Shown piece by piece: positions 13,670-64,000 of a stretch of 64,000 nucleotides of DNA (position 1 is the stretch's first letter; every line of letters starts with the position of its first letter). The notes beneath the pieces are model-generated. The model made no database searches. It was not told where the DNA came from and worked only from the letters and a program-made list of their open reading frames with translations. Made by a program: the position numbers and the translations under genes. The stretch is from contig CM119372.1 in NCBI GenBank assembly GCA_051294905.1, positions 4,402,001 through 4,466,000 on the forward strand. The letters are read 5' to 3'. The stretch comes from Botryllus schlosseri (taxonomy: Eukaryota).

Positions 13670-13790
13670 CCCATCGATTACAACGGCTTCAAGAAGTTTA
13701 TGGTCGCTTACTTGGAGGCGGAACTGCCCGACCTGCTGTGCATTCACATGTTCAGATCATTCCAAAAAGCAAATACTGAGAAAGGAATCG
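13670..13790 (+). CDS. DGKB: DGK coding exon 3 (PIDYNGFKKFMVAYLEAELPDLLCIHMFRSFQKANTEKGI+G)
   Basis: Acceptor tatttctag|CCC (phase 0); donor G|GTGAGT (phase 1). Matches the DGK N-terminal motif IDFEGFKLFMKTFLEAELP..F..HLFMSF. Absent from the ORF track. Confidence 0.95.
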
Positions 13791-16300: not shown

Positions 16301-18739
16301 AAGCGGCATGCATATCATAGACTCATGGTATGCTTATGCGCAGATCGTATGTATATTTTGACATGGCGTATATGCCGCAAAAGCTATCACGGACAAAAAT
16401 ATATAACGGCCTATTCCTATCCCATCTACACCTTTCTGGCGAATGATACATTCTCAAATGTGCGCAGATGGGTATTAATCTAGTCTTAATGCGTATCAGC
16501 GGCAGATACATCAATATCAAAACATTTTTTGTGGAGGACTACTATTTGAATGCATGAACCCTGCGGTTCGGCCGCCGTGACAAAATATGTATATCGTCGC
16601 GATGGACTCAGAGTAGCTTATGTCTATTTTTACGTCTTGGTAAGATCAGGTTTTTGTAAGATTTTCATTTTCTATCGGCTATGGTTATTGGTTATGTTTG
16701 ACGCAATGTGACAAATAGAACCGTGGTCAAGTTATGACCGAAAGAGAAAGTAAATCTTACAAAAACTTGGTTTCCCAAGATGTTCGCAATGGACATCACC
16801 TAGTCACATCCCACTGCAACGGTGCGAGGAAAACCAATAACTGATGCTATAGTGGCAACATACAGTCTTCTGTAAGGAAAATTTTTTCTCTGTAGTAAGG
16901 CATACGAGTAACCAGTGCATACTTAGCCAGTTATAGCACAACTTACTACAAATATGCTGATCGGAGTCGATGATAGATAATCACCACGTTGCTTCATGTA
17001 TTGATCGTGTAAACAGGCCGTGTTGAGTGTTTAGTTATCTTGGTAGTAACGTGCGGTATCAGATGAGAAATTTTCGATGTGTAACCTTTGTAGTCTGAAA
17101 ATTTTCCGATCACTACTACACCGCGTTCGACATCATTACAGTGAAATTGCCGTATTGTCCCACACGTTGTCTGTAGTATACACTCGAAAATATAGCTACC
17201 AACATACTGTTTCCCCCCAGGCTTGATTGCAGTGTGACTTTAAAATAGTAATGCGAATGCCGCAGTCCGTGAAGTGACGTGCGGCGAGTTTTTACGGTTA
17301 TTTGTGCACCAACTGCTACTATGGCGTATCATTGGTCCGGGAATCCCTATATAGTCGAATACGTTTCTATGCGCTAGACTAGGACATTTTCAGCTTTTTC
17401 AAATTAAATCATAATTATAGCTACACAGTTTATTCCCGATTAGATAGAATTATGAATTATAGCTACACAGATTTTTTCAAATTAGATTAGAAATTGGAAT
17501 CGCAGAATTCGCGAAAACCTGTTTATCGAATCACGGTCAGTTCATATCAGATTAGAGTCTAATCTCGTAAGCACGTGAATGGTAAATGTATCTGCAGCAA
17601 TCTCGGCTCTTTTCGCACTATAGAGTTCTCCTGTTGCGTTTCTTTGAAACACCAGAAGTTAGATTTAAATAAAATTAAACTAGATTGGAATTTGAATACC
17701 GGCATTTCGCTACAATTAGTCTAATTAGATCACTAGAATTATCTAGTTGTCGTCTGATAAGTAGGCTACACACATGGTCATGATCACGTACAACGAATTT
17801 CGTTAAATCTCTCCATATCAGATAATGACGGTGTTGCCTTTAGCAGAAACTTTCAAGCATCTATAATTAGCACTGCGGTTGTGTTGTGATCATCAAATTT
17901 TTCGTGTCTTCACCGACAATTTCTTTCCATATTTGCATGCTGCTCTGATTCGTCATGACTGACCGCAAAATCAGACAAGATAGACATGACGCTGTCGGGG
18001 GCGACCGTGTGTGCCTTATCGTCCGTCACAGGTTGGTAGACTTACCCGAATACCTTTTTGACACGTGCATGGGTGATTCCGCAGGCCGTGACATCACATT
18101 AATCGAATCACACGTGCTATTGAGTTGATTCCTCATTTGTAATCGCGGTATGGATGCGTTTCTATTTGATCAATCGGATATGGAGCTAACAGCTGCGCGT
18201 GATTCCCGAAGCCCGTATGTAAACACAGGCGCTGGGCAAGGCCGAGTAGCCGTGTGTTTCGAATCCGAATCGAGTTCTAGGATACGAGTCCGGTCGAATA
18301 TTCTTGTATCATTCGTTATGACCTCGTAGGAGTGTGGATGATGTGGGAAGTTAAAATCCTACCTTTCGCGCCACCGCAAAGAAAATAATGTCAGATCTAC
18401 TCAGATGTGATCAAAGTAATAGCGTAAATTTCTACTCAAGCACAAGCAGAAGTAGCGATTTACAAGTATATAAGTAAGTATTTCGGCCCAATTTTGCCGA
18501 AAAATCAGAAAAACTCAAGTAGAGGTAAGATGTGGCTAAAATCGTAACAACTTTAGGAAGTACTACAAGCAGGATAAACCGATTTAAAGTACTTCGAAAT
18601 GTAGAATTACTTCGATACCGACCGCCGGCCACACAAAACCTGCTCACGGGCCACGGGTTGGCCGCCACTGGCCTGAAATGACCAAAAAGACCACAAAGGA
18701 TGTCATGACAAATGATGTCATGTGGGACTCTTATATGAA

Positions 18740-22460: not shown

Positions 22461-25314
22461 GCGCAATACGGTCGTTAAGCACCCAGCTTCCGTTCAAAAA
22501 TTGTTGACACGCGCCAGCTGTATACTACAAGTTTTGGCGAGTAGAGTGTTTTCACACCCAAAGGGCGGTACACATATATGGATTCACAGCGTGCTCCTAT
22601 ATCTATATCCTATATCGATGGAGTAATCCAGGGTTTGTCATTCCGCCTACCGTGTTCGTCGCCTGTATCGCACGGCGCTAAATTCGCGGAGATATCCCTA
22701 CATCACCCGTAACATCCATTATTCAAGGGCGATGACGCAGATAAGAATATTTGGTTGTAAAAATAGAATTTATACCGCAGGGACTGTGCGTCTCTGATTG
22801 GTGTACTGATTGCAGAGCTTGACAACCAGGAAACTTTAAATTTTTTCAAATTAGATGCGAATTAGAATTACAGCTGCACAGTATTTTCCGAATTAGACTT
22901 GAAGCAGAAATAAAGCTGTACATATTTTCCGAATTATATCCTAATTATTGAATTACTGAATTACTGAAACCTCAAAAACATGGAAATTGATTGAAATTCC
23001 GAATTACAAAGACATACAACAAAAATCGAGTTCGTACCAAATCATAGTTCATTCCCGCAAACACGAGAATGGCAAATGTCTGCACACCGAGGTTGACTCG
23101 TTTCGCGCTACATTGCAGCGCGAAACTGCAGCATTTTCAGGAAAACCAGTAATTAGATTAGAATTACAATTGGAGCATAGGAATATTTCACAAATTAGAT
23201 CAGAATGAAATTAGAGGCATTTCCCGAAAATTCGTCTAATAAGACAACTGGAGCAGGGGTTCTCAAACTTTATATTTTCGGAATCGGTGCGACAGTAGCT
23301 TTGGATCAAGACCAGATTCAGTAAATTCTGCGCTATGGAAGATAACTTTTGGATTGCTAGAAATCCTACTGTCGCTGCGCCGCAAAACAATTCGGATTAC
23401 AGCTTCAAGCGTATAGCGGAACGAAGCTGCAAAATCGGTCGTTGCCATTCCAAGTTAACATTCGATGGTTTCACAGAACTTTGTGTCAATACTGCGGGTT
23501 TATCACAACTCCACAGATATGTTGTTTCCACTAACGTGCGTAGCTTAGCACTACATGTTGCGTATATGCTGCAATACGACCAATCGAGGTTTGCTGCCTT
23601 CCACGGTGGATGATAGTATCGGAACTATAATTCTCGTCCTAGTGGCAAGCAGCGTAAAATTTTAGTACTCAAATAAACCGTCTCTTAATATTCGACCCGA
23701 CTTATTAGAATTATTACTAGATTCAGGTTCGCGCACTCGAATCATTGTTAGCCCTAGTAGCAATAACAGTCGAGAGGCGCTACCGTGACGAACCGGGAAA
23801 TAGCAGATCTTAGCCACCGGTATCAGCGCGTAATAACCTTGCGAGATTGTACCAACAAACAGCGTGAAGTACGTCCGGTCGAAAGTCGCAGGTGACGAAA
23901 CTCTATCTCTCGAGGATATAATTGCATAGCGTCACTCGCTCATCAGATAGAAACAATATGCTCCTTTGCAAGGACAATACGGATATGACGACAGCGGCTT
24001 GATGATAGAGTATTTACCGAACGCTGTCATAGTGCATGTTGTTTTTGATGAATTCATTTGCTTGTGAATGTGTTGTGTTCACTACCGCGCGCTGCGTCGA
24101 TACATCTGGCGACAGATATACTGTTACAAATAAGCCGCCGTTAGATTGGGAATGGCGATTTGGATTGGCGGTGGTGTCTATCGTGCTGGTAAGCGCTGTC
24201 GGGCACGCCACGTATTAGCAGATACAGAGATTAACCATCTTACTGACCCTGATGCATAATTTAAAACATTCTCACAATATTCTGGCTTGGTTTCAAGAAG
24301 TCGGCTTTAGTAATTTATTTCCGATGCTGTTCTCGCACGAAACTTAGTTTCCTTGATATTTCGAAACCTCTTCCTGTCGATTCTACGTCGCCCCCCCTCA
24401 CTTTGACCTTACATTGCCCACAGCCGCTTCTCCAATAATTTATTGCTCTCGGTATGAAGACATGACATCTGGCATTTTTGTCTTGCTAGAAGCAAGTACT
24501 CCATAGTTTTGCGACTTGGAAATTTTCAACTATTTCAATTATAATTACCATTACTGAATTCGCAAAAAGAAATTGGAAATGGAAATAATTTCCAAATAAG
24601 AAAGAAACACAGCAAAAATCAAGTTCAGTTCATATCAAATCAGAGTTCATTATCGTAAGTATGAGAATGACTAATATCTGTACACCAAGCCTGGCTCGTT
24701 TCGCACCATACAGTTATCCTGTAACACTTTTAGTAAAACCAGAAATTAGATAAAGATTTTAAATTAGGGTATAGAAACATTTCACAAATTAGATTACAAT
24801 TAGGTTACCGGCATTTCCCTCCCAATAATCTAATTAGACATCTAGAATTATATAGCTAAAGTTTGATCTCTGCCCAACTATATGCGCGCGCGCTCTAGTA
24901 ATCTGGTCAGTAACTCCTTATTATTGGGAGTACTCAAGTATAGGCTTTGTTGACTTACGCTACTTACTCTAATGGTTATGATTTAGTTAGACCATTTCTA
25001 CTTCACATTTCTCAGTTTTTTTTGGTAAAAACTAGGCTCAGCATACATACTTTTTACTTACTTTGAAATATATATTTCTGCTTGTCCGTGAGTAGAGATT
25101 TTGTTACTTAATCTTGACTACCAACGAAATGACCACTTTAACCACCTTTATCCTATAGTGAAGCGTTTGTCACGTTCACGTCATAGATATCGATAATTGA
25201 ACGAGAATCCATCATTTATTAATACAGCGAGACGCGCTATAGGTATGATTTCTTGTCGTTGTCGCCTATAAGGCGAAACGAAACAGTTTCTTTTTACCAT
25301 CCCTTCACTTCTAG

Positions 25315-28620: not shown

Positions 28621-28791
28621 TTCAATCGCCCTCGCGGTCGACTTCAATATCCGTCGCGCGGCCCGTCGACACCACGGCGCGTTCCAGCAACCCAGACCAA
28701 GTACCCTTGGACGAAGAATTCGTCCATCTCAAAGACATCGTTTGTTACTTATCGTTGCTGGAAGGAAACAGGCCCGAAGATAAACTGCAAT
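28621..28791 (+). CDS. DGKB: DGK exon ending the recoverin-homology region (VQSPSRS...[26 protein letters not shown]+F)
   Basis: Contains [24 protein letters not shown], the hallmark type I DGK motif. Phase-1 acceptor aaaatttcag at 28620; donor T|GTGCGT at 28792. The 5' boundary is less certain because of an alternative AG at 28586. Confidence 0.93.
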
Positions 28792-28852
28792 GTGCGTATT
28801 CCGCGTCTAAATATAGACGTGAGCCGTGCTTAAAATAGAACCGCTTTTACAG

Positions 28853-28902
28853 TTGTGTTCAAGCTGTACGACACAGACGAAAACGGAAACCTGGATAGCA
28901 GG
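28853..28902 (+). CDS. DGKB: DGK EF-hand 1 exon (FVFKLYDTDENGNLDSR)
   Basis: Follows a 61-bp intron; acceptor ccgcttttacag; donor AGG|GTGAGT (phase 0). EF loop DTDENGNLDSR-E. Confidence 0.96.
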
Positions 28903-31900
28903 GTGAGTTATAGCGTTCGGCTTTCATTGATCTGCACTGAAACGTGTTTTCATATTAGAATATTAACACCCTTAGAGGTACAGGTCTTCAGTATACTATT
29001 GAAAAATATATTAATATTGACGCAATCCCGAATATTTTCGGCTGACACTCGTATATTTACACGATTATTGATTAAAAATGTTATTTTCAATTCTCTACTA
29101 TAGTTGCTGACGATTACCCCGGCGAGTGTCAGCCGGAAACGTTTAGCTTTGGACATAGTATTAAATTATATTAGCATGTCTCACCACACAATACCTTGAG
29201 GTTGTGCTCGCCTTCTTACTTTGAACTGCAATCATTTACGCTTGTGATTATTATTATCAATCGGCATTCAACATTGATAATAATTAGTTTGTGATTTACA
29301 CACCCGGGCTTGTACAACTGTAGAGTGTACACTCGTATTTTATGCAAATAGGTGACCTAGTTTAGCCTATATAGCCTATAGTTATAAGTTTGGAAATCAA
29401 TTGTATAGGTTGATTTAGTCCGTATGATAGCAATCTCCGGCAATTATAAAGTATGATGAAGTATTCATTCGGCGAACAAATTATTATTTAAGGCATTGAA
29501 TTTATAGCTACTGAATATCACGAGAACGTCGTGTTCTTATGTTTCCAATTCGTACCGACTGATTATGATATGGCGTACGCTGACGCAGAAAACGTATCCC
29601 TCGCAACAGAGGTTTGGCGTGCCAAGTTACTGTACGATACAGTCTCGGTGACAAATAAGCACCGTTGCAATGCGATTAGGGTTGATGCAACCTTCTGGTT
29701 TGCAGCTTATGACAATAACCATCAATGATTTGATGTCAGATGACATTACAGTACATTGATAATGTACGAGATGAGAGGTTTATCACAATTCGCACATTTG
29801 GGTTGACCGAGATAACTTGACACGGCAGAGTTGGGACGAGAAAATTTTCTTTATTTGCAAACTGGATTAGAATTGGAATTTTAGATTAATTTTTTTCCAA
29901 ATTAGATTGAAATTATATTTTAGAACATAGAGATCATTTATAAGTTGGTTTGACTTGGATCAGTATCAGTATCAGTTTATTAATATTTTCATCATTTCAA
30001 AACACCACAAAACTTGGCAATTTCTAGCTTCGTCATATCTTCTATGTTTAGAACAACAAATGTTTTGAGTAGCGATTTATCAGTTTTCAGATTTTCAACA
30101 TTTGTCTACGATTAGTCCGATTGTACAACTAGAATTATCTAGTATCTATTCTCAAATTCCCAGGATGTATATTTGCGTTTGCCAGCAGCTTTGCATTTTA
30201 TACACAGCGTATAGTTGACCAAACGGTATGCCTTTAAATACCGACGCAAACGACGCATGCTGCGTCGCGCATGTTAGGCACACCCTTCTCGACGTTGCAG
30301 ATCTAATTTTCGTAAAATTAGACGGTGCTCATAAAAACAAATCTCGCAATTTCTAAAGGTCCGCGTTTCGTGCGCAATGGCCTGATGAAGTATCATATCG
30401 ATGATATTCTGTGTTTACCTAACGGACCATGCATAGGCTACGTCCAGAAACTTGCGCAAAGGTATTGATGTCATGCTGCGAGTGTCGTGTTGACTAGTCC
30501 GTGACGCGGGTTGGAATTTACGATGTACAACCCCACCTTTCGTACACTCTACTATCGGATCCCCGTGACCCCATAATAGGGTACAGGTTTTTGTAATGAT
30601 AGACTTTACAATGTGCATGTGTGTCGGTAAAAATGATTTAGTTTTGCAGAGAGTTGGTGTGCGTTGACACATGACCTACTAAACTTTAGTAGGCCATGGT
30701 TGACATGATTTTTAGAGCAACGTCGTGGAAATATGGTACAGCGTACAGCACACATATACCATTCCACATTTATTGACAGAAATGTATATCTGTTATGTCG
30801 CCTATTGTCATGGGCCCAGTTGTGCCTTTCTGACTGTGTAGTTTGTGGTTTCGTAAGCCATGGGTGTATAATTCACACCCATATATCACAGGTGGTGCTC
30901 GGGAGGAAATATACACATTATTTTAGCTAAGAATTTAGCGTATGGTGAAAATCAATTAAACGACACTTTTGAGTACTAAATCATGCTTCCGCACTCTTCC
31001 AATGGGTAAAAATGGTTCACCAATCCTTACGGACATATATCCCAGGGATGCAGTGGGTCATGTTTTCGTCCCAAGAATGAATATATTCATATACTGAAAT
31101 AAACCCGAAAATATACTGGCTGATTTCAATTGATTATATTATTCAATTGTGTATTGAAGTTCTTTATCTCCAAGAAGCTCTCCAAATATCCCGGAAAATA
31201 TTGAAAATACGGTTCACATGAACCGGGGGTGTCAAACATACGGCTGACTAGCCGCGACTAGCCGCATCCAGCCCGACAAGTAATTTTAAGTAGATTGAAA
31301 ATGCGTGTATTTTCGAGAATGTTGGTAACTGCAAATGTTGAGATTTTTAGTAAGAAACACTTCCGCTGAATGATCCCTCTCGAATACAAATATAGTATGT
31401 TCATTATTCAAAAGCCATAACCATCCGACAGCGGTGTTGTGATTTCACTATCATTACCGTCAGGAACAAGTCTTTCATGTTGACACCCAATTTCGAGAAG
31501 GTAAAAATGTGCCCAAAACTAGTTATTCACAGAAGCGAAAACGTTAATGTCAAACCTTTATATGCAGGTTACATGGAGAATATAATAGTTACAGGAAAAT
31601 ATAATTCAAATAACTGTGGTCAGCTCTTGTATTCCTAAAACAAAGGGTGCATAGAAATATGACAACTCATATCATCGTAAGAGCGTCCGTTCAAGCCCAT
31701 GCAATTCAATTGTATGTTGAAGTTCTGTGTCTCTAAGAAGCTCTTCTATTATAAAGTTGCACTTTGACACGGTGCCAATATCAAGTTCGCAATCAAAACT
31801 TCATCTTCCAAACGCTGCCCGAACGTAAAGCGCGTCAGTGTGACGTGTTTACGTTATCGGAATACATAACGAGGCGCAGCTAAGTAGGCATTCACGCGCG

Positions 31901-38446: not shown

Positions 38447-41353
38447 ATGTAGCGCACCCGCACAGTCGATGATGCATTTTGACGATCATACAGGTTGGAC
38501 ATTCCAAATTTTAACCAAGAATTCCATGTAAGCCTCGAGATTTGGACGTTTTTTTAAATCACTGGTGAAGTTGGATGATAACGCATGTTAGCATGGATTT
38601 GGACATGTATTCCCAAATTGAGGATTTGGGTTTTAGAATATGCACTTTATGCACTCCACTCAACTTTTGGTTTTCCACGTATTCAGCCACTTGTTATTTT
38701 TGTGACGCAATAGCCGCCCGATCGCTTATATCCTTGGAGTGGAAAATCAATTGACATGTGATGATCGTCTGAACTTGACTGTACATTTGTTCAATGTGTA
38801 CACGTACATATAGTAGTGCTATGTACTAATCGTTAAATCTTCACATTGAAGGATCGAGTTCCATTGGGAAAACAGAAAGGTATAGGGCAGGAATGAAAGG
38901 GCATGTTCCAAATTGAACGGAAATCTAATATTTTGTGTCGAAATATATGTTTTAAACCCGTTCAACGGATTCGGACGAAGATAATGGATTTGAATAGTTT
39001 TCTTTCCATAAATGATTTCACAGAACCCCTGTGCCCAGCCGCATTCGCGAGCTTGTCTTAATGCATACAGTGTTCAGTGTCGCAAAATAGGTTGGAAACA
39101 CTGCTACAAAATACAGCACGCAGGCATTCTGTCTGTGCATTCGCGTAACGTGCTGACAAATTGGTGTAGAAAAACCTCGATGCTGCAAAACCTGATTACC
39201 ATTGCCTAACGACAATGTTGTTCGTACTACATCCGCCCACAAAAGAACTAAACCGCCCTGCGTCGACGCGAGTAATTGCTTCACTTTGAAACGACAAGCC
39301 AGTGCTTTTCCACGGATGCCCCGATATTATTTCCTGTCAGCGTCTGCACAAGCACATGCATACTTAGGTAAAGAGCTCGGTCGCACCAGATTGGCTTATG
39401 CGAAGCTCTAGCGTTTTTAAAACATCCCTAATTATTTACGGCATTAGCTTTACAACAGGTCTCAAAAGATCAGCGCATAGCGCAGTAATATCGCAATATT
39501 GGCGAAATTTGAAGCATTTGAAGCTGACAACAAATCACTATGTCTGCGCTATGTGATGTCACAAATCCAACGTTGTCCGTGAGAACCGTTTGGTGGTGTT
39601 GGCAGGGCGTTTAGGAGGCGCGGCTATAGTATCTATATTTTGCCAGTGTTTTTGCGGGAATAACATATCAACTGAGTTGGAATAGTTCTTGATTAAATTA
39701 GATCATAATTGGAATTACTGAAACCTTGAAATTGAATAAAATTCTGAATTGGAAAAAACTACTACGAAAATTAAGCCCGGTTCATATCAAATCGAACATC
39801 GAAGTTCATTCTTATAAGCACGAGAACGGCAAATGTCTGTACAACTACACCAAGTTTGGCTGTAGGCTAAGTACAGTTCTACTGTAGCAAAGTAAGGAAA
39901 ACCATTCACTGGACTGGAGCAGAGAGACATTTGAAAATTCGATTAGAATTAGATTACCGTCATTTCGCTATATAGGCAGTCTCGTTGGACAACTCTGGTT
40001 GTCCAGGTTTGTGAATGCAACGATTCTGAAGTTTTGCCACTGTCGCCACAATTCGATGAGTTATCCATGCAATGAGTCTCAATGTAATGACTACAGCATA
40101 ACTATCTCATACTGTCGGAAAATACATACCGACGTAATTCGTGCTGGACTTTCGTTCCCCTTGTGTCCGATCGATAAAGCGCCCGGAGACGATCTCCGAA
40201 AATAATCCAGTATTCATTGATTTATGGACGCCGTGTAATTTAGTGAATTCTAGCGTGGTTGCGTGCCCTTTTCCCAAAACAGCCGAGAACGTTCGCTGTA
40301 GAATCGTTAGGCGGGTCTATTATATCTTTCCTGCGCGTCGCGTTAAAGATCCGTATTCCATGCGACCCGAATCAAGTAACCCGTGTCGATTCGAAGGTTT
40401 CTGGCATCCGTTCCTAGACTAGGTCCTCCCTCGCCATCTGATCCGCGATAGCGGTGTCTTTAAAAGCCTATAAAGTGAATCGTGCTTTAGGTCTGCAGCT
40501 ACAGAATCATAATAAAGAATATCGGCTTAGTGCAAATGACCATTGTGGTCAATAAACGCCATGAATACCACCAATAACAACAATTCCTTGTTAGACGGAA
40601 TTTATGATTTACGTCTGAATCGATTTGTATCCACCGTATAGCGTATTCTTTGGAGACGCTTGTCTCGTCTCTGCGTCAGGCGTGGGGGTTTTCCTAACCG
40701 GTCGCCCCAATCAAAGCATTTTGGGCTAATCGGAATCGATTATACTCCATGAATATTCGATTATATCCTGCGACATGGGGATTAGCCCATCTTTCGTTGT
40801 TAAGAGGCTGGATTTTGAGCAGATGCTGTGTTCGCCGCTTAGCGTAATTCTGTTTGACCGAATTTATACCAGGGAGTCTTTTTAACTTCTAAACTCTGGG
40901 TGGGAATCAACTATTTGTGCTATCGGACTATAGATGATGAGATAATAAGATTCAATTGAATAGAGTATATAATTCATATTGAAATCAACCCTAATGTTTT
41001 CGGTTCACACTCGTCATGAGTAATCGTCAGCAACTAGTAGAGAATTGGAAAGAACGTCACATTCGAATTCTCTATACTTCTTGCCGACGATTACATCTGA
41101 CGAGTGTCAGTAGGAAATATTCGGGTTCATTTCAATATGAATAATGAATATACTATTCGATTATATTAACCTATCGTACTTCACAATACCTCGAGGTTGT
41201 GTTCAGCACCTTATGCATATTGAAGTTCTCTACCTCCAATGCTATTTTATAATAATATTGAATTGCTGTCATGTATCAGTATCAGTGTAATGTAATAGGG
41301 CTGTGATGCGTTGTTCCGTCGTTTCCAAATCTTATTCCATTGTGTCGTTACAG

Positions 41354-41428
41354 GAAATGGATAGGATTGTGAACCAAATGATGCGTGTGGCAGAGTATCT
41401 CGGATGGGATGTCACGGAACTGCGCCCA
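41354..41428 (+). CDS. DGKB: DGK EF1/EF2 connecting exon ([25 protein letters not shown])
   Basis: Acceptor tgtcgttacag; donor CCA|GTAAGT; 75 nt, phase 0-0. Matches the motif QMM.VAEYL.WDVTEL.P. Absent from the ORF track. Confidence 0.96.
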
Positions 41429-43049
41429 GTAAGTAACATAGTATAGAACTAATTCTAATCTAATTTGTGAAATGTTGTTACCTCTAGTTTTAATTCTAAT
41501 CTAATTTATGATTTCCTGAAAATACTACATAGTGTGAAACGACCCATACTTGGTGCAGAGATATTTGCGATTCTCGTGCTCATGACAATAAACTCTGATT
41601 TGAACTTGATTTGTGTGGTATTTCTTTCTAATTTTGAATTAGATTTAATTTCCAAGTTTTGCGAATTCATTAATTCAAATCTAATTCATAATTCAATTCA
41701 TTCGAATCTAATTTTGAAAAAAAATGAATTATAATTATAATTCTAATTTAATTTTTAAAAGCTGAAAGTTTCCTACGGTTGTCCGTCTCTGGTCCAAAGC
41801 AGGGCGTGTATTTGCAAGAACAGGCGTGTTCAAAAGTCGTCCGTGTTTATTGCGATCGCTATGCATGCCACGCTGTAGGCCCGCAGCACACTCTACAACG
41901 CGCAAAGAATTGATCAGAGGCATGAAAACGTTCAGACATGTGTCTCTGTGTATCGTTGAGATTCCGCGCGTGAGAATATGTCTAAATCAGAATGTCCGCA
42001 ATCTGGGCAAATATTTGAATTGACGTCATAGCGCTGTTTGCCAGTGTACTTAATCTTTATAATATTGAGATTCTAAGCCGCGTGTTTATAGATATGTACA
42101 CACCACTACACAGCGAGACAGTTTGGCATTTTCAGTAACTTACATTCGCAATCCGCAAATATAGACTGTCTTGTTATTAATAGCAACGATATCTCGCTTG
42201 TCTTCAAGATTGATGACTGCGACTAAGGCGTTAGCAATAGTTGTTTCATTGTGACGTCTCAATGCGTTTCGATATGTCGTCCGCAGCGCATTTTCATAGA
42301 GATACAATGATACACGCCACAAATAGCATCGGTCACCGAAAATAGCCCGCGCAAACGTACACTACACTGCACGCATTGATGTTGAAACGGGTTTCGTACG
42401 CAACTGCATCTTGTAATGCGTTATTTTGCGTCACAGATGCGTTGGTTATATGCCGTCTTGTTCTGCTAACAATAGAGAGGATAGAGTTGCGTGCGTTTCA
42501 ATCTATTTTATGCGTGGCTTACGCAAGCTGCGTTTGCCGCGCTTCCTGTTGTAAGAGACATTGCATTTATAGAAGTCGTTCTACTTCGCAATCAATGGTC
42601 ATTTCTGTATCGGCAACAATGATATATCGGCAAAGTTGTAGTAAGCATGAAAGCTTACAAGTTGCTTTGTCCGTGATGCGTGCGTTTCGTGAGTAACCGA
42701 ACTACAGACGCTGTAACTGCGACCCCATTGATAATTTCGCTGCCTCGCTTCTGTCTGGAACTTGCTCGCCATCACCGGCTAGCGGGCGTCAATATTTTCC
42801 TATTGAAATAAACCCGTCAGGGATAAGCGTCAGCAACTAGTACATAATTGAATAGTATAACGCGACTTAAAGTAGTCTTTGGAATCGGACACCCACCTTG
42901 GCCTAGGCGAGGTAGAGAGGCATGCACACTGAATGAAAATTTAAGAAGAAAGGATCGAAAAAAATCAATCGACAAAAAATGGGGTGGCATGTCATGGAAG
43001 GCGAGATCGATAGGTCAGGTCGTGGTTCGGTAATCTTGAGGATGGACCA

Positions 43050-44570: not shown

Positions 44571-44734
44571 TGTTGATATACTGTACAATGTTCTTTCCGA
44601 TTCTGTACCAGTTGCGGACGATTACCCCTAACGTGTGTCCGCCGACTGTATTCTGGTTTATATCAACATAAATGTACTATTCAATTTTATTTTGAAGTTC
44701 TGTGCCGTCAATAATCTCCATAATGTTTCGGCAG

Positions 44735-44854
44735 ATCCTTCAAGATATGCTGCATGATATCGACTACGACGGAGATGGAGTCGTAACTCTCGAAGAGTGG
44801 ATACACGGCGGCTTGACCACGATCCCGCTCCTTGTCCTGCTAGGTCTGGAAACG
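44735..44854 (+). CDS. DGKB: DGK EF-hand 2 exon ([40 protein letters not shown])
   Basis: Acceptor gtttcggcag; donor ACG|GTAAGG; 120 nt, phase 0-0. Canonical EF loop [12 protein letters not shown] followed by [12 protein letters not shown]. Confidence 0.97.
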
Positions 44855-56792: not shown

Positions 56793-59700
56793 GTGCTGAT
56801 ATCGTCGGTGAGGCTATTGTGACCCGCGGCGAGCATTGGAAAGAAAGGACATAAGACAAGAAACAAGGACAATGAAGTTTTGTATAGCTGTAATTTCAAC
56901 AGGTCCCCTCAAACTAAATTGCGGACCCCCGTATCGTGGCTCTATTCTGCCAAATGACTGACCTCTTTTGTGCCTCTATATCGAACATAAATACCACCCC
57001 ACAAATACCATACCAATACCAACTCATTTTCTTCCGGTTTCGCACCTGTTTTTTTTTCTTTCTTATATTTGATATTCTTTGTATAGGGATCACACTGCAC
57101 AATTATTGCTTTGGTGTATTTAAAAGGGAAGTGCTTAGTGCTTTACGAATTCCATCATATCTTTATCATGGCACAATTTTAGCGATAGACGGACCCTTAT
57201 AACATACATGAGTTTTCGGGCCTCAATCGAACATAAATCTTCAACCGTTTTGTTTGCATAAGGTGTAGGCCATGCTTACTGGATACTGGACCCTCCTTCA
57301 TCGCGTGCATGCGTACCGGCACATAGCGGACTTCTACCTATACTTAAATCGCTGGTTGTACAGTATAACACAACGCAAACGCATACATACAGGTGTTTGC
57401 AGCTGAGCATATGTAACGCCACTTCAAATTCTTGGAATAGGCGTTGCGATTGTTAGAATCTCATATCCCGACCACAGGAATGCACCGAATAACCGCATTC
57501 GAAAACCCTCATCTCTTCATCGCTAGGCCATTGTCACCTTTGTGACCTTTATGACGTCGAGCGCCTTGTGTTCGTTGCGGTTGTTCATTCCCAAAATAGA
57601 ACCTTCACTCAATGGGCAATCATAACAATTTCGGACTTCTCCAAATAAATATCACGGCGCACTGATTCACCCGCTGCCGCGAATAATTCGCTGTTGAGAT
57701 CGCGCTTGAGCCTGCGGAGTTCTGAAAAAAAATGACACCTCATCGATACTCGAGGGCTGGTTAATGACTGGATGACAATGGCGTACGTTATTAACTCACA
57801 ATGGTAATCGCGCGATATGCCGCTCCAGTGTCGAGGAGAAATGATTTATTCGAGTCTCGGGGATTTACACAAAATTCAGCGTGAGTTGCAACTTGAACTG
57901 CCTGTGGGTTGTAACAGCCGCTGCGAAGCGCAAGTTTTCACCCCGTGAAGGCTAGATTATCCTTAAATTCCGCTGTAATGGTCCACGGCCGTGGACTGCT
58001 ATGGATATCGTATTCTATCTCAAAATTGTTGTAATCAAAATCGGAGGATTGTGTAATCTAGCGATCGCCCAGTTGCAGATTTCAAACTCAACTCTACATA
58101 AATTCGATCCAAAATGTGTCGGTCTCACACGTACACTGCTGGTTTCTGTTTTCAGAAATGGCGTGCCTCGTTAGAGTCGTTACTCGTCCTGTATCAAGAA
58201 GATATAATGTTTGGTTACAGCTTTCCCGTCACTAGGCAGACAAACTCTATATTTCTGTGTCCTGATGTAGGTTGACTTTACGTATTGGATGACGTCACAT
58301 TGATAGGAGAATGGGAGAATGGCTCTCTTTGACACTGCTTGAGATGCATCTGGCTCCATTCCCAGGTGCTGGAAACGATAAGACGCTATCGTGCTCAATG
58401 AGCAACACCGATTATATACGCTTGGCTATTATACTCCATTCCAAACAAATTCTAGTCATGAAGAATGACGACCGCGAGCATATATTTCAATTCAGAAATA
58501 TCTGCGGTCGGCTACTACGAATTATTTCGTTCTAGAATCTAGATGTTGACAGGTAGCTAGTAACAACGCAATTACGTAACTAACTGAACTAAAAGAGAAA
58601 GCGCCGATACTGCTGCCGTAAGCCACGATGACCCTCTAAAAAAGCACCCTGTCATTCAATCTCCCGACTCCTTGTATCAAAATGCTGACAACAGAATGCA
58701 TTTCGCCGATCAATTGAGCGTGGTATTATAGCTAGTTAATTTTCCTTGCGTTTCACCCATTTCCAACTCTCGAGGGAACTGCTGTGAGTCATTGAGACTT
58801 CCCCGCACTATGCAGTTGATATAAACCATAGGAGACAGGTGATGACCCAAAATTCTGAAATTTATGGTGTAAGTAAATTCTGCTATCGTCCAAGAGATTC
58901 TCGTATTTCATGCGCGAATGTCATACTTCGACAAATATTGAATTAAGAATTTTCTTTTTACATTATAATTTTTGTCAGACTACAAACCTAAGAACTGTCG
59001 TGCACCTTGCGAAAATATGTAGCGGAAATATATGTGAAACTATAGGAGAAATGGAAATGTAAGACAGCTCATCGTGACCAACATTGTTTTATTTTTCAAC
59101 ACCCGTTTTCAAGTAGGTTAATTTCTGAAAAGGCCCATGTCGCAACTAAAATTTGATAAGTCCAGTGAATAGAAACATCCTTAGTGGAAACGACATTGGA
59201 CGGTGATAACTTTAAAAGAGATTGTGTTTTTTCGGTGACACATTTCGGTTTTGAGGCGACGTACGGTGTATAAGTCGCTGATGCATTGATTTACTTGTAA
59301 GACTCAAGCAGTGGCCACACGTTGCCTAGAATCTAGTTTTCAGTCGCGTATAACTGTGTCAGAAATATGTCTTAAATGTGCAGTCGGAAATATGTCTTAA
59401 ATATGCAGTCGGCTGTGCGCTTAATTTGGGCACAACGCATTCAAAATACGGTACTGTTGCGTAATAAATCAATTGTAACTGCGCAATATTACAGTAGTTG
59501 ACACAGATAGCATAACACGCACATTAGTTTACCTTCTGGTTAGTCTCATTGTACAGTATTTTCAATACAAAATCATTCAGCAAAAACTGTGTGCTGTAGT
59601 ACTGTGAAATACACGCAGCATATACGGGTGAAATAGTACTTTTCGATATCCAACCAACGTAACTAACTGCCGAACTGTCAAGGATGCGTCTTTACTGTTT

Positions 59701-59929
59701 CTTTACTTTAGTGAGCATAATTTCACTTTTTCTGCTAAACTTCCCTATACCACTCTGTATCACATGGTGCACGCAATTGTACCAATTAAAAGCGACTATG
59801 ATGCCGTCACGGCCGTGTATAAGGTCATTGTTGATGTTACTGCATAGATCGTCATTGTTTCACTGTAATCTTTCACCTAGTCTTAAAATGAATGAAGTAC
59901 TGTTTATTGTGACACATCCTAACGATAGG

Positions 59930-60065
59930 AATTGCGACCATGTGTCCGAATTAAGCGGATAATTGATTTAGGTGCAATTTTTTTTTATCCGTTACTGGAC
60001 GTTTCAGCCGAATAAAGCGGTTGTCCGAGTTATCCGGTGTCCAAATTAAGTGGGGTCGACGGTAT
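59930..60065 (-). mobile_element. Tigger/pogo-like MITE end fragment
   Basis: Minus strand TA|CCGTCGACCCCACTTAATTTGGACACCGGATAACTCGGAC with repeated gtccga.ttaag/atccgg subterminal motifs. Confidence 0.45.
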
Positions 60066-61272
60066 GTGTTTTGTTTAAGTTTCCAGCTATTGTAAGAGGC
60101 AATTAGAGATTTGATTATAATGCAGATGATTGTCTCTAGTCTGATTAGCGTCTCGAAGTCGGGCGATTTGTTCATTATTCCCATTTTCTGTCCTTTATCA
60201 GAATTACAGCGCTATAAATAGACTTTCCATTTATAGTCCGCCGCGACTATATTTAGCTTTCATTTCGACCAAAATTAGAGTCAGATGTATACCGAAGAAT
60301 GTTATATCAAATATTTCTAACAATGCTCCGTACCTCTTTCGGTATAGCGTCTATTATGTCATGTCAGGGTGCGATGGCGCAATTTGTGGCGCATGTGGCC
60401 TTTGGTCTAATTCCATACGATCGCATGAATCGTATGATATAGCTACATTATGATCAAGTCACATACATGTTGGAGATTATGACCTGAAATTCTGCGTTTT
60501 AGTCACACATCACTGATGAAAATAAGGCTATGCGTCTATTGATAGGTAGGAAACACTGACTTCATAGGATATACACCTAAAATAGCTTTCACCAAATGTA
60601 GTACATGTTACTAATTTTTACATCCGGCGAAGTCGCTAGAATTCGCGCATGTTTTGGCTAGCGAGAACTGGTGTAGTCCCTAGTTCGATAATGAAGTTCT
60701 TAAAAATCTTAATTTTGGTCCGATTGGGTTTCACTTATTCACGACGCCATTGATTTCTAAAATTCATTATTGCATAAGTGTGGTCATGAGGTTGCATTCT
60801 TTTTAGGGATGCATTTCTATCTGATGCGTCACATATAGATCTCAATACGTACTGCACATGAAGTTTCGTATTTTGACTCTTATTTAGACTGTTGCAAGCG
60901 CGTGACAAATTCAGTAGGGATTATTCGAATATTTATAGTAGCATTGGTTGGTTTTAGTAGTTTTTTGCGTTGTTTATAGTACTGCGATAAGGTTATAGCC
61001 TGGCGGGTATGCCGCGAACAAATCAAATGCATAGTATGCCGCGCCACGAGTAACTAACCAGAAAACGAGAGACCGGCATATTGAATGACTTCATTCAGAT
61101 CACTGAAGCGTGTCTCGATCTGAGAGAATCAGTTCATTCATTAGAAGTCGGTATCTGCGTTGCCCAGATCACTGTGTGTAGCGTCTTCGCTTGTGCGGAG
61201 CTAACCTTTGGAAGCTTCGGTTACTCTTATTTATTTGCCTATTTATTGAAAGTTACTGTAGAAAAACTATTT

Positions 61273-61335
61273 ATGAAGTTAGCGAGACCAAAATACAAAA
61301 GATTGGAGAATATGGTTCAAACGTGCGGATGCAAG
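61273..61335 (+). CDS. DGKB: Candidate alternative start exon for a short DGK isoform (MKLARPKYKRLENMVQTCGCK)
   Basis: ATG at 61273, 21 open codons, donor AAG|GTGAGC in phase 0 matching exon 63425. Inr-like TCAGTT at 61129 with no ATG between it and 61273. Confidence 0.6.
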
Positions 61336-62723
61336 GTGAGCATAAGCGTAGAGGCTGTACTCATTTACGAGTCGCGCAAATCAATTAGCAAGTTAATGAC
61401 TCTGCGAATAAGTCAATCTTGATGCTGTGCTAAAGGTGTACTGCATGTAAAATTACTTCTTCAGTGAACGACGGAAGGCGATAAATTCTTTTTAGCGGCA
61501 TACATTATAGCCAGCGTCTTGTATGCGATTATGTTGACACTATACAATGTGTATTGTTTAGACTCGTATAACATTGCAACGTTATCGTTAGATGTCGGCT
61601 TAGGCTTTTTAAATAACTAGGTCACTCTCTCTTAGGCCCGTTGAAGTATTTTTGTATGCGGAGAGAATCTTTGGAGTTATAGAACTTCACAGCATACAAT
61701 TTGGTAGTATATTCATATTGAAATAAAACTGATACTCGTTAGCAACTCGTAGATAATTAAAAAGAACATTGTATGTCAACAATCGTATCACCAAATATTT
61801 TAGTATTTCTTGTACGTAATGCACATGTTAGAAGAACCAGATAGTTCGCTGCCTGCACTATGTAGTCTATACAGGGTATGATGTATTGTTACTACCGCTG
61901 TAAGTACATGAGTTATTTTGTTGTGATGTTGCGATACTGCTTTTCTCACATCCACAGTATACTCACGCATGCGTCAAACGATATCTATAGGCAAAGGAGA
62001 TTACGATGCGACACGCTATATCTTCGGATTTCGTATATTGTGGGGGTTTGATCGAAATAATACTTTCTCCTGAGATGATTTTGAATTTGTAGGCGGCGAT
62101 TAGTATTGTACGCTAAACGAGTGTTCAAATATTACGAAACGCGGTATTCATTCGTTTCGCCGTTGTCTTAACCTTAAGCTATTGTTTCCGAGTTATCATA
62201 GGCCAGGCCTAACCTTTATCGCCGGAACAATGTGAAGTCTATGGGTACATCATCTGCTGTCCGAAGTCCAAACTCGTATGGTTAAATCTGTCTTCAACAT
62301 TCAGAGTAATATTTATTGACCTCTGTGTGGGAGAATGAACTCCGTTTTGGTACAATATCTTGGAGTCGGCATTGTATATTCAAATTTCATCACCGAAAAT
62401 TCCCTCGCCGAAAATTGTAGACAGTGTCTAGATTTGGTTTTTCTAAAAGGAAATAAACGCAACTGATTCTCCTCTAAGCGGTCGAAGATTGGCCGCGGCG
62501 TACCGTAAGTGCGAAATTGGGTTATTACGCGTCTTTAGAGTTGAGGTAATGATCGGTTGCCAGCTGATTTCTACCATAAAACAATGAACTCGCTGTTTTA
62601 ATGATACGGCCGTGTTGATTTTACGTTTGCACACAATTATTCAACGTCTGGTGCACGGGCTGTTGGAAATCGTCATTGATAAATTCGTCACCATCCATCA
62701 CATAAAGCAACTTATATCAGATC

Positions 62724-62832
62724 AACACAGCACTGCATTTCAGATAATGTATATACTTCCCGCTGTGACATAAATTGTAGAAGCACAGCATTTCAGATAC
62801 TGTATATACTTCCCGCTATGATGTAAATTGTA
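62724..62832 (+). repeat. Two-copy ~50-bp tandem repeat
   Basis: gcatttcagata.tgtatatacttcccgct.tga..taaattgta occurs twice. Confidence 0.75.
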
Positions 62833-63424
62833 AAGTGTAACGGATACGCGTGTGTATTTTTAAACTGTATCGCTGTGTTAACGTCACGCTGACGTTTTTC
62901 CTTTATGTCAATGGGCTAGATAGCAGCGATACTCTGTCGTCTGAATTGGTTTCAATCAAAGCCGGTTACTGCTTGGTAGCAAGCGAAATCAGTACGCAGC
63001 TAGCCGACAATGTCACATTTGCTTTACGAATAACGTAAAATTTGCATGCTATTTCCACCCATGGTCTTCGCCTTCGAAAACACTTTCGGGTATGTTTTTA
63101 AAATCGGAATGGCGATGGTTATATTGTTGCTGGCGCGTAGCGCAACTAACTGGTCAAAATCAGCCGGCTGTCACACATCAGGAGTATTTTTAGACGTTCT
63201 TTGTTATTTTACGCGAGGTGTTATCATTCTTCTCCTTGTGTGTAAACCCAAGGGTCGATTATGCACCAGACAAAGATTCCACGTACTGTTTTTGTCTTGG
63301 TATCGTATGAAGCGCATCTCTCTTTTGAAGGTTGCACGGTCCATGTCCAAAATTCACCGCGTTATATAATTACGATGCGATGCAACTTACCGGGGCCCTT
63401 TTTTATTCGTGTCATGTTTTCCAG

Positions 63425-63542
63425 AATATAAAAGACGACGGAACACATTCTTGGCGAATGAAACACTTCACTTCGCCCGCCTATTGCAACTACTGTCTCA
63501 ACATGCTCGTGGGCGTCGGGAAACAAGGCCTGTGTTGCACTT
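63425..63542 (+). CDS. DGKB: DGK C1a zinc-finger exon ([39 protein letters not shown]+F)
   Basis: Acceptor catgttttccag; donor T|GTAAGT (phase 1). H-x12-C-x2-C spacing and the motif [28 protein letters not shown]. Confidence 0.97.
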
Positions 63543-64000
63543 GTAAGTAGTCTCGCATCGGATGCGAGTAATGCGTGTTTAAATTAGGGTAGGCTGTTCA
63601 GTGCTCCCACCAGAGTTGTGGACCCCTAGAAAATTTTAACCTTTCTTAAATTAGATTATAATTATAGCTATACATCTTTTTCTAAATTATACTAGAATTT
63701 GAATTATACCCAGGTTTTTCTAATGAGATTAAAATTATAATTAATTAATTCGCGAAAACGTGGGAATTGAATCAAGTTCATATCAAACCAGAGCTCATTC
63801 CCATATGCATGAGCGTGGCGAATATCTCTACACGTACAGCAAGCTTGTCTCGTTTTGCACTATACAGTTCTCCTCTAGCGTTTTCAGAAAAAAACAGAAA
63901 TTAAATTAGAATTAAAATTAGAGCGTGGAAGCATTTCACAAATTAGATTAGTATTATAGCAAAGAAACACTTCACAAGTTACATTAGAATTAGATTACCC

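Follow-up and report, generated by a model that had tools for sequence, protein, structure and literature searches.

The stretch of DNA analysed here, referred to below as the window, comprises 64,000 nucleotides of the Botryllus schlosseri genome (GenBank assembly GCA_051294905.1, contig CM119372.1, positions 4,402,001 to 4,466,000 of the forward strand) and accommodates a gene for a type I diacylglycerol kinase (DGK) that continues beyond its end, with a candidate internal first exon proposed in an earlier, first-pass annotation made from the sequence. Type I DGKs are defined by a Ca2+-sensing head made up of RVH plus EF-hands. Pfam scans of exon translations together with whole-genome family searches revealed one placed type I DGK locus in this genome, equipped with RVH, EF-hands, two C1 domains, the catalytic domain DAGK_cat and the accessory domain DAGK_acc; other matches to the RVH family PF14513 are confined to small unplaced contigs. 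In tblastn searches with type I DGKs the gene is 55-60% identical to DGK-beta-like proteins of hemichordates, echinoderms and vertebrates, and its EF region shows 60-76% identity to known type I enzymes. The interval from 61201 (or further upstream) to 61335, situated inside the 18.6-kb intron between the exon for EF-hand 2 (hereafter EF2) and the first exon of the first C1 domain (C1a), is very probably a genuine alternative 5′ exon of this single placed gene, one that would give mRNA devoid of RVH and EF-hand exons. All of these exons lie upstream of it (13.7-44.9 kb) and hence would be bypassed. The features are collected in Table 1, where numbering above 64000 continues the window into the loci L002-L007.

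The alternative exon is genuine and is spliced onward through four further DGK exons, those of C1a and C1b. RNA support for it spans three runs from three studies, which are denoted X1, X2 and X23; altogether four runs were aligned to the segment 60801-66800 (locus L008), and the fourth, X20 of organism B, contributed no read to it and carries no weight either way. The joint 61335→63425, bordered by GT..AG, is present in an assembled contig of X1 and in two reads of X23. The X1 contig (815 nt, depth 22.3) is composed of 61000-61335, 63425-63542, 64745-64833, 64897-65013 and 66575-66674, all its gaps being GT..AG and 120 nt falling on the shorter side of the joint in question. It is unbranched at the C1a acceptor, and the assembly of X1 extends the C1a exon in the 5′ direction into the alternative exon only; the contig's depth of 22 is to be compared with 2-6 for intronic contigs of the same run. 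The two reads of X23, a set of raw reads recorded as RNA-seq, cross the same joint from different starts. The exon depths of this run are unfit as an isoform ratio, since all exons are shorter than a read and the pieces align unevenly. In X2, the colinear match of one contig ends exactly at 61335, its final 17 letters not continuing into the intron; a separate contig of the common exons is deeper (29.8) than that of the alternative exon (6.2), and a third one represents an unspliced intron-exon boundary. Since the donor at 61335 is spliced in RNA, the exon is real, and junction reads of the kind that the first-pass annotation had named as a check on its proposal are at hand.

The coding part of the exon is a 21-codon frame (MKLARPKYKRLENMVQTCGCK) opened by the ATG at 61273, the last codon of which abuts the donor AAG/GTGAGC, the G of the donor GT being nucleotide 61336. 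Phase 0 is common to the end of the EF2 exon and the start of the C1a exon, which itself ends in phase 1, one base into a codon. When exons are joined at the RNA-derived junctions, a stop-free frame runs from MKLARP... through both C1 domains. Phase-0 mini-frames of the type ATG...GTRAG with at least 10 codons are encountered only twice in the entire EF2-C1a intron, and this one is more than a chance occurrence because RNA shows its donor in use. This region has a single copy in the genome of 495.5 Mb, the 21-residue peptide has one occurrence there, and an Rfam scan of 60000-62000 matched no family. The reading of the frame, of the phase-0 donor and of its agreement with the C1a exon, made in the first-pass annotation, thus holds, as does its remark that TCAGTT at 61129-61134 is followed by no ATG until 61273 (61129-61272 are ATG-free). 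The same is true for the acceptors 61252 and 61261 being in phase 1 against the phase-0 end of EF2, exon starts at 61253 or 61262 leading to an immediate stop if joined to EF2.

Table 1. Features of the type I DGK gene and of its alternative 5′ exon (window coordinates; numbering above 64000 continues beyond the window end).
Feature	Position	Strand	Evidence and remarks
RVH-domain exon, predicted to be bypassed	13670..13783	+	PF14513, 45.8 bits; tblastn with type I DGKs
RVH (28.6-28.8 kb) and EF-hand 1 (~28.86 kb)	28662..28903	+	PF14513, E 4e-7, 30.8 bits (cut-off 23); weak EF-hand_6 match
EF-hand linker exon (approximate bounds), predicted to be bypassed	41351..41431	+	70-74% identity to vertebrate type I DGKs
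Canonical EF-hand 2 exon, predicted to be bypassed	44698..44854	+	EF-hand_5, E 7e-5, and EF-hand_1, E 2.5e-4 (the single exon scores below the family cut-off); tblastn
Long form of the alternative exon	61000..61335	+	X1 and X2 contigs; outron, long leader or precursor RNA
Two short upstream open reading frames, long leader only	61009..61123	+	ATGs 61009, 61027 and 61036 to stop 61051-61053; ATG 61085 to stop 61121-61123
TCAGTT, "Inr-like" hexamer	61129..61134	+	Chance frequency; RNA upstream (X1, X2), raw-read edge downstream
Short form of the alternative exon, 135 nt	61201..61335	+	X23 raw reads; 5′ edge 61201-61208; no upstream ATG
Coding part of the alternative exon	61273..61335	+	ATG and 20 codons, MKLARPKYKRLENMVQTCGCK, phase-0 end; in frame with C1a-C1b
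Second in-frame ATG, codon 14	61312..61314	+	GAGAATATGG, A at -3, G at +4: strong context
Intron between the alternative exon and C1a, GTGAGC...TTCCAG	61336..63424	+	RNA joint, L008 533→2623 (cut +2)
First C1a exon, acceptor common to the EF2 and alternative exons	63425..63542	+	PF00130 C1_1, E 6.6e-7
Second C1a exon	64745-64833		Beyond the window end; X1 contig
C1b	64897-65013 and from 66575 on		Beyond the window end; X1 contig; C1_1 matched twice in the gene
DAGK_cat, three exons	69.3-71.3 kb		Beyond the window end; Pfam
DAGK_acc	72.4-72.8 kb (C2:4474423-4474794)		Beyond the window end; Pfam, 95.8 bits

The first-pass annotation further stated that the element behaves as a start exon and cannot be an in-frame cassette, and the two halves of this statement fared differently. 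Four AGs were overlooked (exon starts 61072, 61099, 61168 and 61201), each of which would give an in-frame, stop-free cassette, and therefore its impossibility does not follow from the letters of the genome by themselves. The designation as a start exon gained from RNA, as the unbranched X1 contig and the lack of X1 among the runs listed for EF2 favour a 5′-terminal exon over a cassette. The runs covering the alternative exon best are X1 (0.67) and X2 (0.50), and neither is listed for the EF2 exon, though shares down to 0.25 are listed. X25-X28 contain the EF2 exon and are not listed for the alternative one, and X3-X7 and X12 contain both. The alternative exon is present in runs of at least five studies, and the partial overlap between the runs containing it and those containing EF2 suggests regulated use.

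If the element were nevertheless an internal exon of the canonical transcript, splicing from EF2 to 61201 would lengthen the segment from EF-hand 2 to C1a by 45 residues in frame, and entry at 61253 or 61262 would turn it into a poison exon. Such an arrangement draws on the AG at 61199-61200 coinciding with the 5′ boundary that the raw X23 reads show, on the interval 61201-61335 being in frame and free of stops over its 135 nt, and on the frame remaining open upstream of ATG 61273 as far back as 61054, an openness found at ~1% of positions per frame. Yet the acceptor at 61201 is a poor GAG preceded by a tract with just 60% pyrimidine, and the X1 contig, from a run not listed for EF2, is colinear and unbranched through 61201. 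Moreover, the 219 nt of open frame preceding the ATG contain seven variants, of which three fall within 61201-61272, and all seven change an amino acid, as expected for non-coding sequence, which weakens the cassette beginning at 61201. No variant in X1, X2 or X23 falls into the 63 coding nt. On this balance a cassette appears very unlikely, and the exon is inferred to be 5′-terminal.

Much less certainty is attached to the point where the exon begins. The start at 61129 suggested in the first-pass annotation is not supported: the RNA of X1 and X2 runs upstream of this position, the edge of the raw reads in X23 lies downstream at 61201-61208, and the hexamer TCAGTT occurs 38 times in the window with 40 ± 6 expected and therefore is no evidence for a start site. 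The X1 contig reaches upstream to 61000; the X2 contig matches colinearly at least as far up as 60801, the edge of the aligned segment, and has 225 letters beyond it (to ~60576). Since both runs also carry low-depth intronic contigs, the 5′ ends of these contigs are not mapped start sites, and the upstream extensions are precursor or outron RNA. A TATA-like TTTATAG at 60973-60979, which precedes the first nucleotide of the X1 contig by ~25 nt, may serve as a lead for a long-leader start only. In X23, depth is zero at 61001-61200 and rises to nine reads over 61213-61214 and 15 over 61241; none of the aligned 150-nt reads falls on the segment over its full length, which makes the exon shorter than one read. 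For this run, the mature 5′ edge is therefore placed directly 3′ of the AG at 61199-61200. It could correspond to a start site (~61203), to a spliced-leader acceptor (61201) or to a cis acceptor; pile-ups of read beginnings or ends are not listed for the reads aligned to 60801-66800, and contig ends are not start sites. A mature 5′ end at ~61201 would arise either from a start site there or from spliced-leader trans-splicing of an outron beginning upstream of 61000.

Taken to its full extent, the second of these routes would dispense with an own promoter altogether: a spliced leader would be joined to the canonical pre-mRNA at 61200/61201, the RVH and EF-hand exons being discarded together with the outron, and the switch would operate at the level of RNA processing. 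The sharp edge of the raw reads directly 3′ of an AG and the presence of RNA upstream of this edge in X1 and X2 are consistent with it, and such processing is plausible in a tunicate, as in Ciona trans-splicing affects at least 58% of expressed genes (PMC7986045); a cellulose-synthase-like match of 26 bits agrees weakly with the tunicate origin of the genome. At the same time, no multi-copy gene for the Ciona leader is present here, where the leader followed by GT gave one match with one mismatch, and a Ciona-style spliced-leader gene pattern is found at chance level (two matches, compared with three and nine in controls). The GAG acceptor is weak, and the fact that X1 is not listed for EF2 fits an internal promoter at least equally well. 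We regard production of the exon from the canonical precursor by trans-splicing as improbable, ranking it somewhat above the cassette, and retain an alternative 5′ exon as the preferred reading.

In the mechanism that we consider, the donor 61335/GTGAGC joins the ordinary C1a acceptor at 63425, RVH and EF-hand exons would be absent from the mRNA, and translation of the first long frame would begin at ATG 61273 or at the ATG in better context at 61312 and proceed through C1a-C1b into frame-compatible catalytic and accessory exons. With either start, the predicted protein consists of two C1 domains and the kinase, having neither RVH nor EF-hands. In the form that begins at 61201, no AUG precedes that of ATG 61273. 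Leaky scanning could deliver ribosomes to ATG 61312, the product of which would begin with MVQTCGCK and lack the basic patch. If made, the protein would presumably be free of Ca2+ gating owing to the loss of the autoinhibitory N-terminus.

A number of observations weigh against the element as a functional coding first exon. The records of X1 and X2 only guess at RNA as their source, though their spliced contigs show cDNA. The edge of the raw reads has an AG directly beside it, and cis splicing of EF2 to 61201 would preserve the frame. The context of ATG 61273 (CTATTTATGA) is weak, with T at -3, and four ATGs precede it in the long leader. The contrast between the 63 coding nt, free of variants, and the 219 nt upstream, with seven, does not reach significance (P about 0.13). 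The claim regarding Ca2+ rests on one isozyme, engineered DGK-alpha, so that the opposition of constitutive and gated forms may not transfer. Further points come from comparison with a relative, represented by an ENA contig (L015) that was reached via a called open reading frame (P0001) 84% identical in a catalytic exon. Its EF2 exon (L015 6258-6380) and C1a exon (16753-16869) are 88% and 74% identical to those described here, and conserved exons average ~77% identity; the 21 residues have no tblastn match in the complete 10.4-kb intron between the two (L015 6381-16752), and blastn of this intron against its counterpart gave no similarity. The best tblastn hits of the peptide in the relative, with E values no better than 0.4, lie off-site or in the wrong orientation. 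Finally, no database protein of 67-213 aa carries the peptide (word-indexed search with the 122-aa open frame, region 50-94), a length range that makes the search silent on full-length isoforms.

Conservation of the frame in related species, which the first-pass annotation had offered as a test, thus left no trace in the one complete orthologous intron at hand, and the exon is probably lineage-restricted; it may be conserved among closer kin only or be young. An additional search with the C1a region (rotifer DGK P0152, region 338-400) revealed, among the best 120 of 798 matches, none from this genome and none having a leader of its own before C1a. Two further features of the relative's locus were noted: a 421-aa open reading frame with the reverse transcriptase domain RVT_1 lies on the opposite strand of the relative's contig (L015:15433-16698), ~55 nt upstream of the C1a exon, and the intron between the first and second C1a exons is 13.7 kb long in the relative vs 1.2 kb here.

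The comparative data raise the question of whether the exon, albeit real, is young transcriptional or splicing noise, in which a cryptic intronic promoter or splice site yields a transcript that is poorly translated or not at all and carries a functionless leader. The intron of the relative lacking a homologue of the exon between neighbours that are 74-88% identical, the weak context of the first ATG, the upstream reading frames of the long leader, and the uniqueness of the peptide in the genome and its absence from database proteins in the range searched are all in line with this. Against it stand the position of the exon in X1 as the sole assembled extension of C1a in the 5′ direction, at a depth well above that of intronic contigs, its presence in runs of several studies with a use differing from that of EF2, and a frame perfectly compatible with a complete C1-kinase protein. 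Noise seems unlikely to us, albeit the strongest of the rivals, and a genuine alternative 5′ exon remains the preferred explanation.

What such an isoform would mean for the enzyme can be judged by analogy with known DGKs. The autoinhibitory role of the head is so far known from engineered deletions of mammalian DGK-alpha, and removal of RVH and EF-hands is reported to leave DGK-alpha constitutively active and to bring it to membranes (PMC4050180). The deletion resembles the product predicted here in that the N-terminal Ca2+-sensing module is missing while both C1 domains and the catalytic region are retained; it differs in being a laboratory deletion of a mammalian isozyme, whereas here a natural alternative 5′ exon, known from sequence and RNA, would supply its own leader of 21 (or 8) residues. 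Activity of DGK-beta and DGK-gamma is little affected by Ca2+ (PMC4050180), and therefore the size of any functional switch in the gene under study is uncertain.

Formation of isoforms that differ only in N-terminus and expression pattern from one gene has parallels within the family. DGK-zeta1 and DGK-zeta2 differ at the N-terminus. The N-terminal regions of DGK-delta1 and DGK-delta2 differ likewise (PMC7555651). Both pairs belong to other classes, namely type IV and type II, which distinguishes them from the gene under study. In type I, variants described for DGK-beta and DGK-gamma affect the C-terminus or the catalytic domain. The layout of the predicted protein, with a short, possibly membrane-directed N-terminal segment followed by two C1 domains plus a catalytic domain, is reminiscent of type III DGK-epsilon, which is a separate gene family having a hydrophobic N-terminal helix; here a type I gene would produce the same layout, the helix being replaced by a leader that is basic and contains Cys. 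Short database models of type I DGKs (~580-620 aa; bird DGKB P0193 and P0196, spider "diacylglycerol kinase 1" P0223) also have only C1, DAGK_cat and DAGK_acc as Pfam domains on record, but these predicted proteins still include EF-hand 2, as they start at an internal Met in the EF-hand linker. A search of the open-access literature found no natural isoform of type I described as lacking RVH and both EF-hands, a silence that counts for little by itself; the new element is an alternative 5′ exon that would give a naturally head-less type I DGK mRNA. If this is true, the coexistence of a natural head-less isoform with one placed type I locus would offer a ready test of uncoupling diacylglycerol removal from Ca2+. 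The practical value at present is that of annotation, as RNA documents the exon together with its junction and those downstream, its frame being in register and its use uneven across samples. The importance is limited by the apparent restriction of the exon to a lineage, by alternative 5′ exons being commonplace, and by all functional claims being inferred.

The leader itself contains a cluster of basic residues adjoined by cysteines (K2, R5, K7, K9, R10, C18, C20 and K21), a feature read from the sequence only. Dual-Cys palmitoylated N-terminal anchors are found in GAP-43, PSD-95 and SCG10 (Cys22/Cys24), and C18 and C20 are similarly placed two residues apart, near the N-terminus and beside basic residues. 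In distinction from these anchors, a Gly2 whose myristoylation could prime membrane contact is absent, and the basic patch would be lost with a start at Met14; neither the orthologous intron of the relative nor the rest of this genome contains a homologue of the cysteines and basic residues. Anchoring by a palmitoylated polybasic leader is possible and represents the weakest step of the account, since the predicted palmitoylation of C18/C20 is suggested solely by resemblance to the di-cysteine anchors. In the most far-reaching scenario, trans-splicing at 61200/61201 would switch the only type I DGK gene between a Ca2+-sensing form and a head-less, constitutively membrane-engaged form tethered by a palmitoylated di-Cys basic leader; of all the possibilities considered, this combination is the least credible, and we hold it highly improbable.

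Several minor observations were made in the surroundings of the exon and in the DGK family. The second C1a exon and the first C1b exon are parted by a 63-nt GT..AG intron (64834-64896; L002:834-896), which is supported by X1 and X2 contigs and two X23 reads in a gene that has introns of 16-18 kb as well. Within 59000-62750, the observed-to-expected CpG ratio is 1.0-1.5 in every 500-nt window, that is, CpG is not depleted, and a tandem duplication (53-nt unit present twice, 90% identical) is located at 62729-62832, between the alternative exon and C1a. Two short intronic segments, L008:930-1000 and L008:5020-5150 (~61730-61800 and ~65820-65950), have contig depths of 4,250 and 19,177 in X1 with many chimeric joints and loose ends, and look like copies of an abundant, highly expressed short interspersed repeat. 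Similar translated motifs of the type ...LELKLE... occur at 22960-23205 and 63879-63956, and near 71300 and 73100. Elsewhere in the genome, equal-scoring copies of the RVH-end exon (PF14513, 30.7 bits) reside in unplaced contigs (G000:C21:42782-42883, C21:199694-199795 and C32:51952-52053) and are probably haplotigs or assembly duplicates of the 5′ region of the DGK gene. Two loci in tandem at G000:C5:235070-241831 have an uninterrupted frame of 312-313 aa apiece, within which the DAGK accessory domain is complete (155-162 bits), and, unlike the exon-fragmented type I gene, appear to be intron-poor DGK genes.

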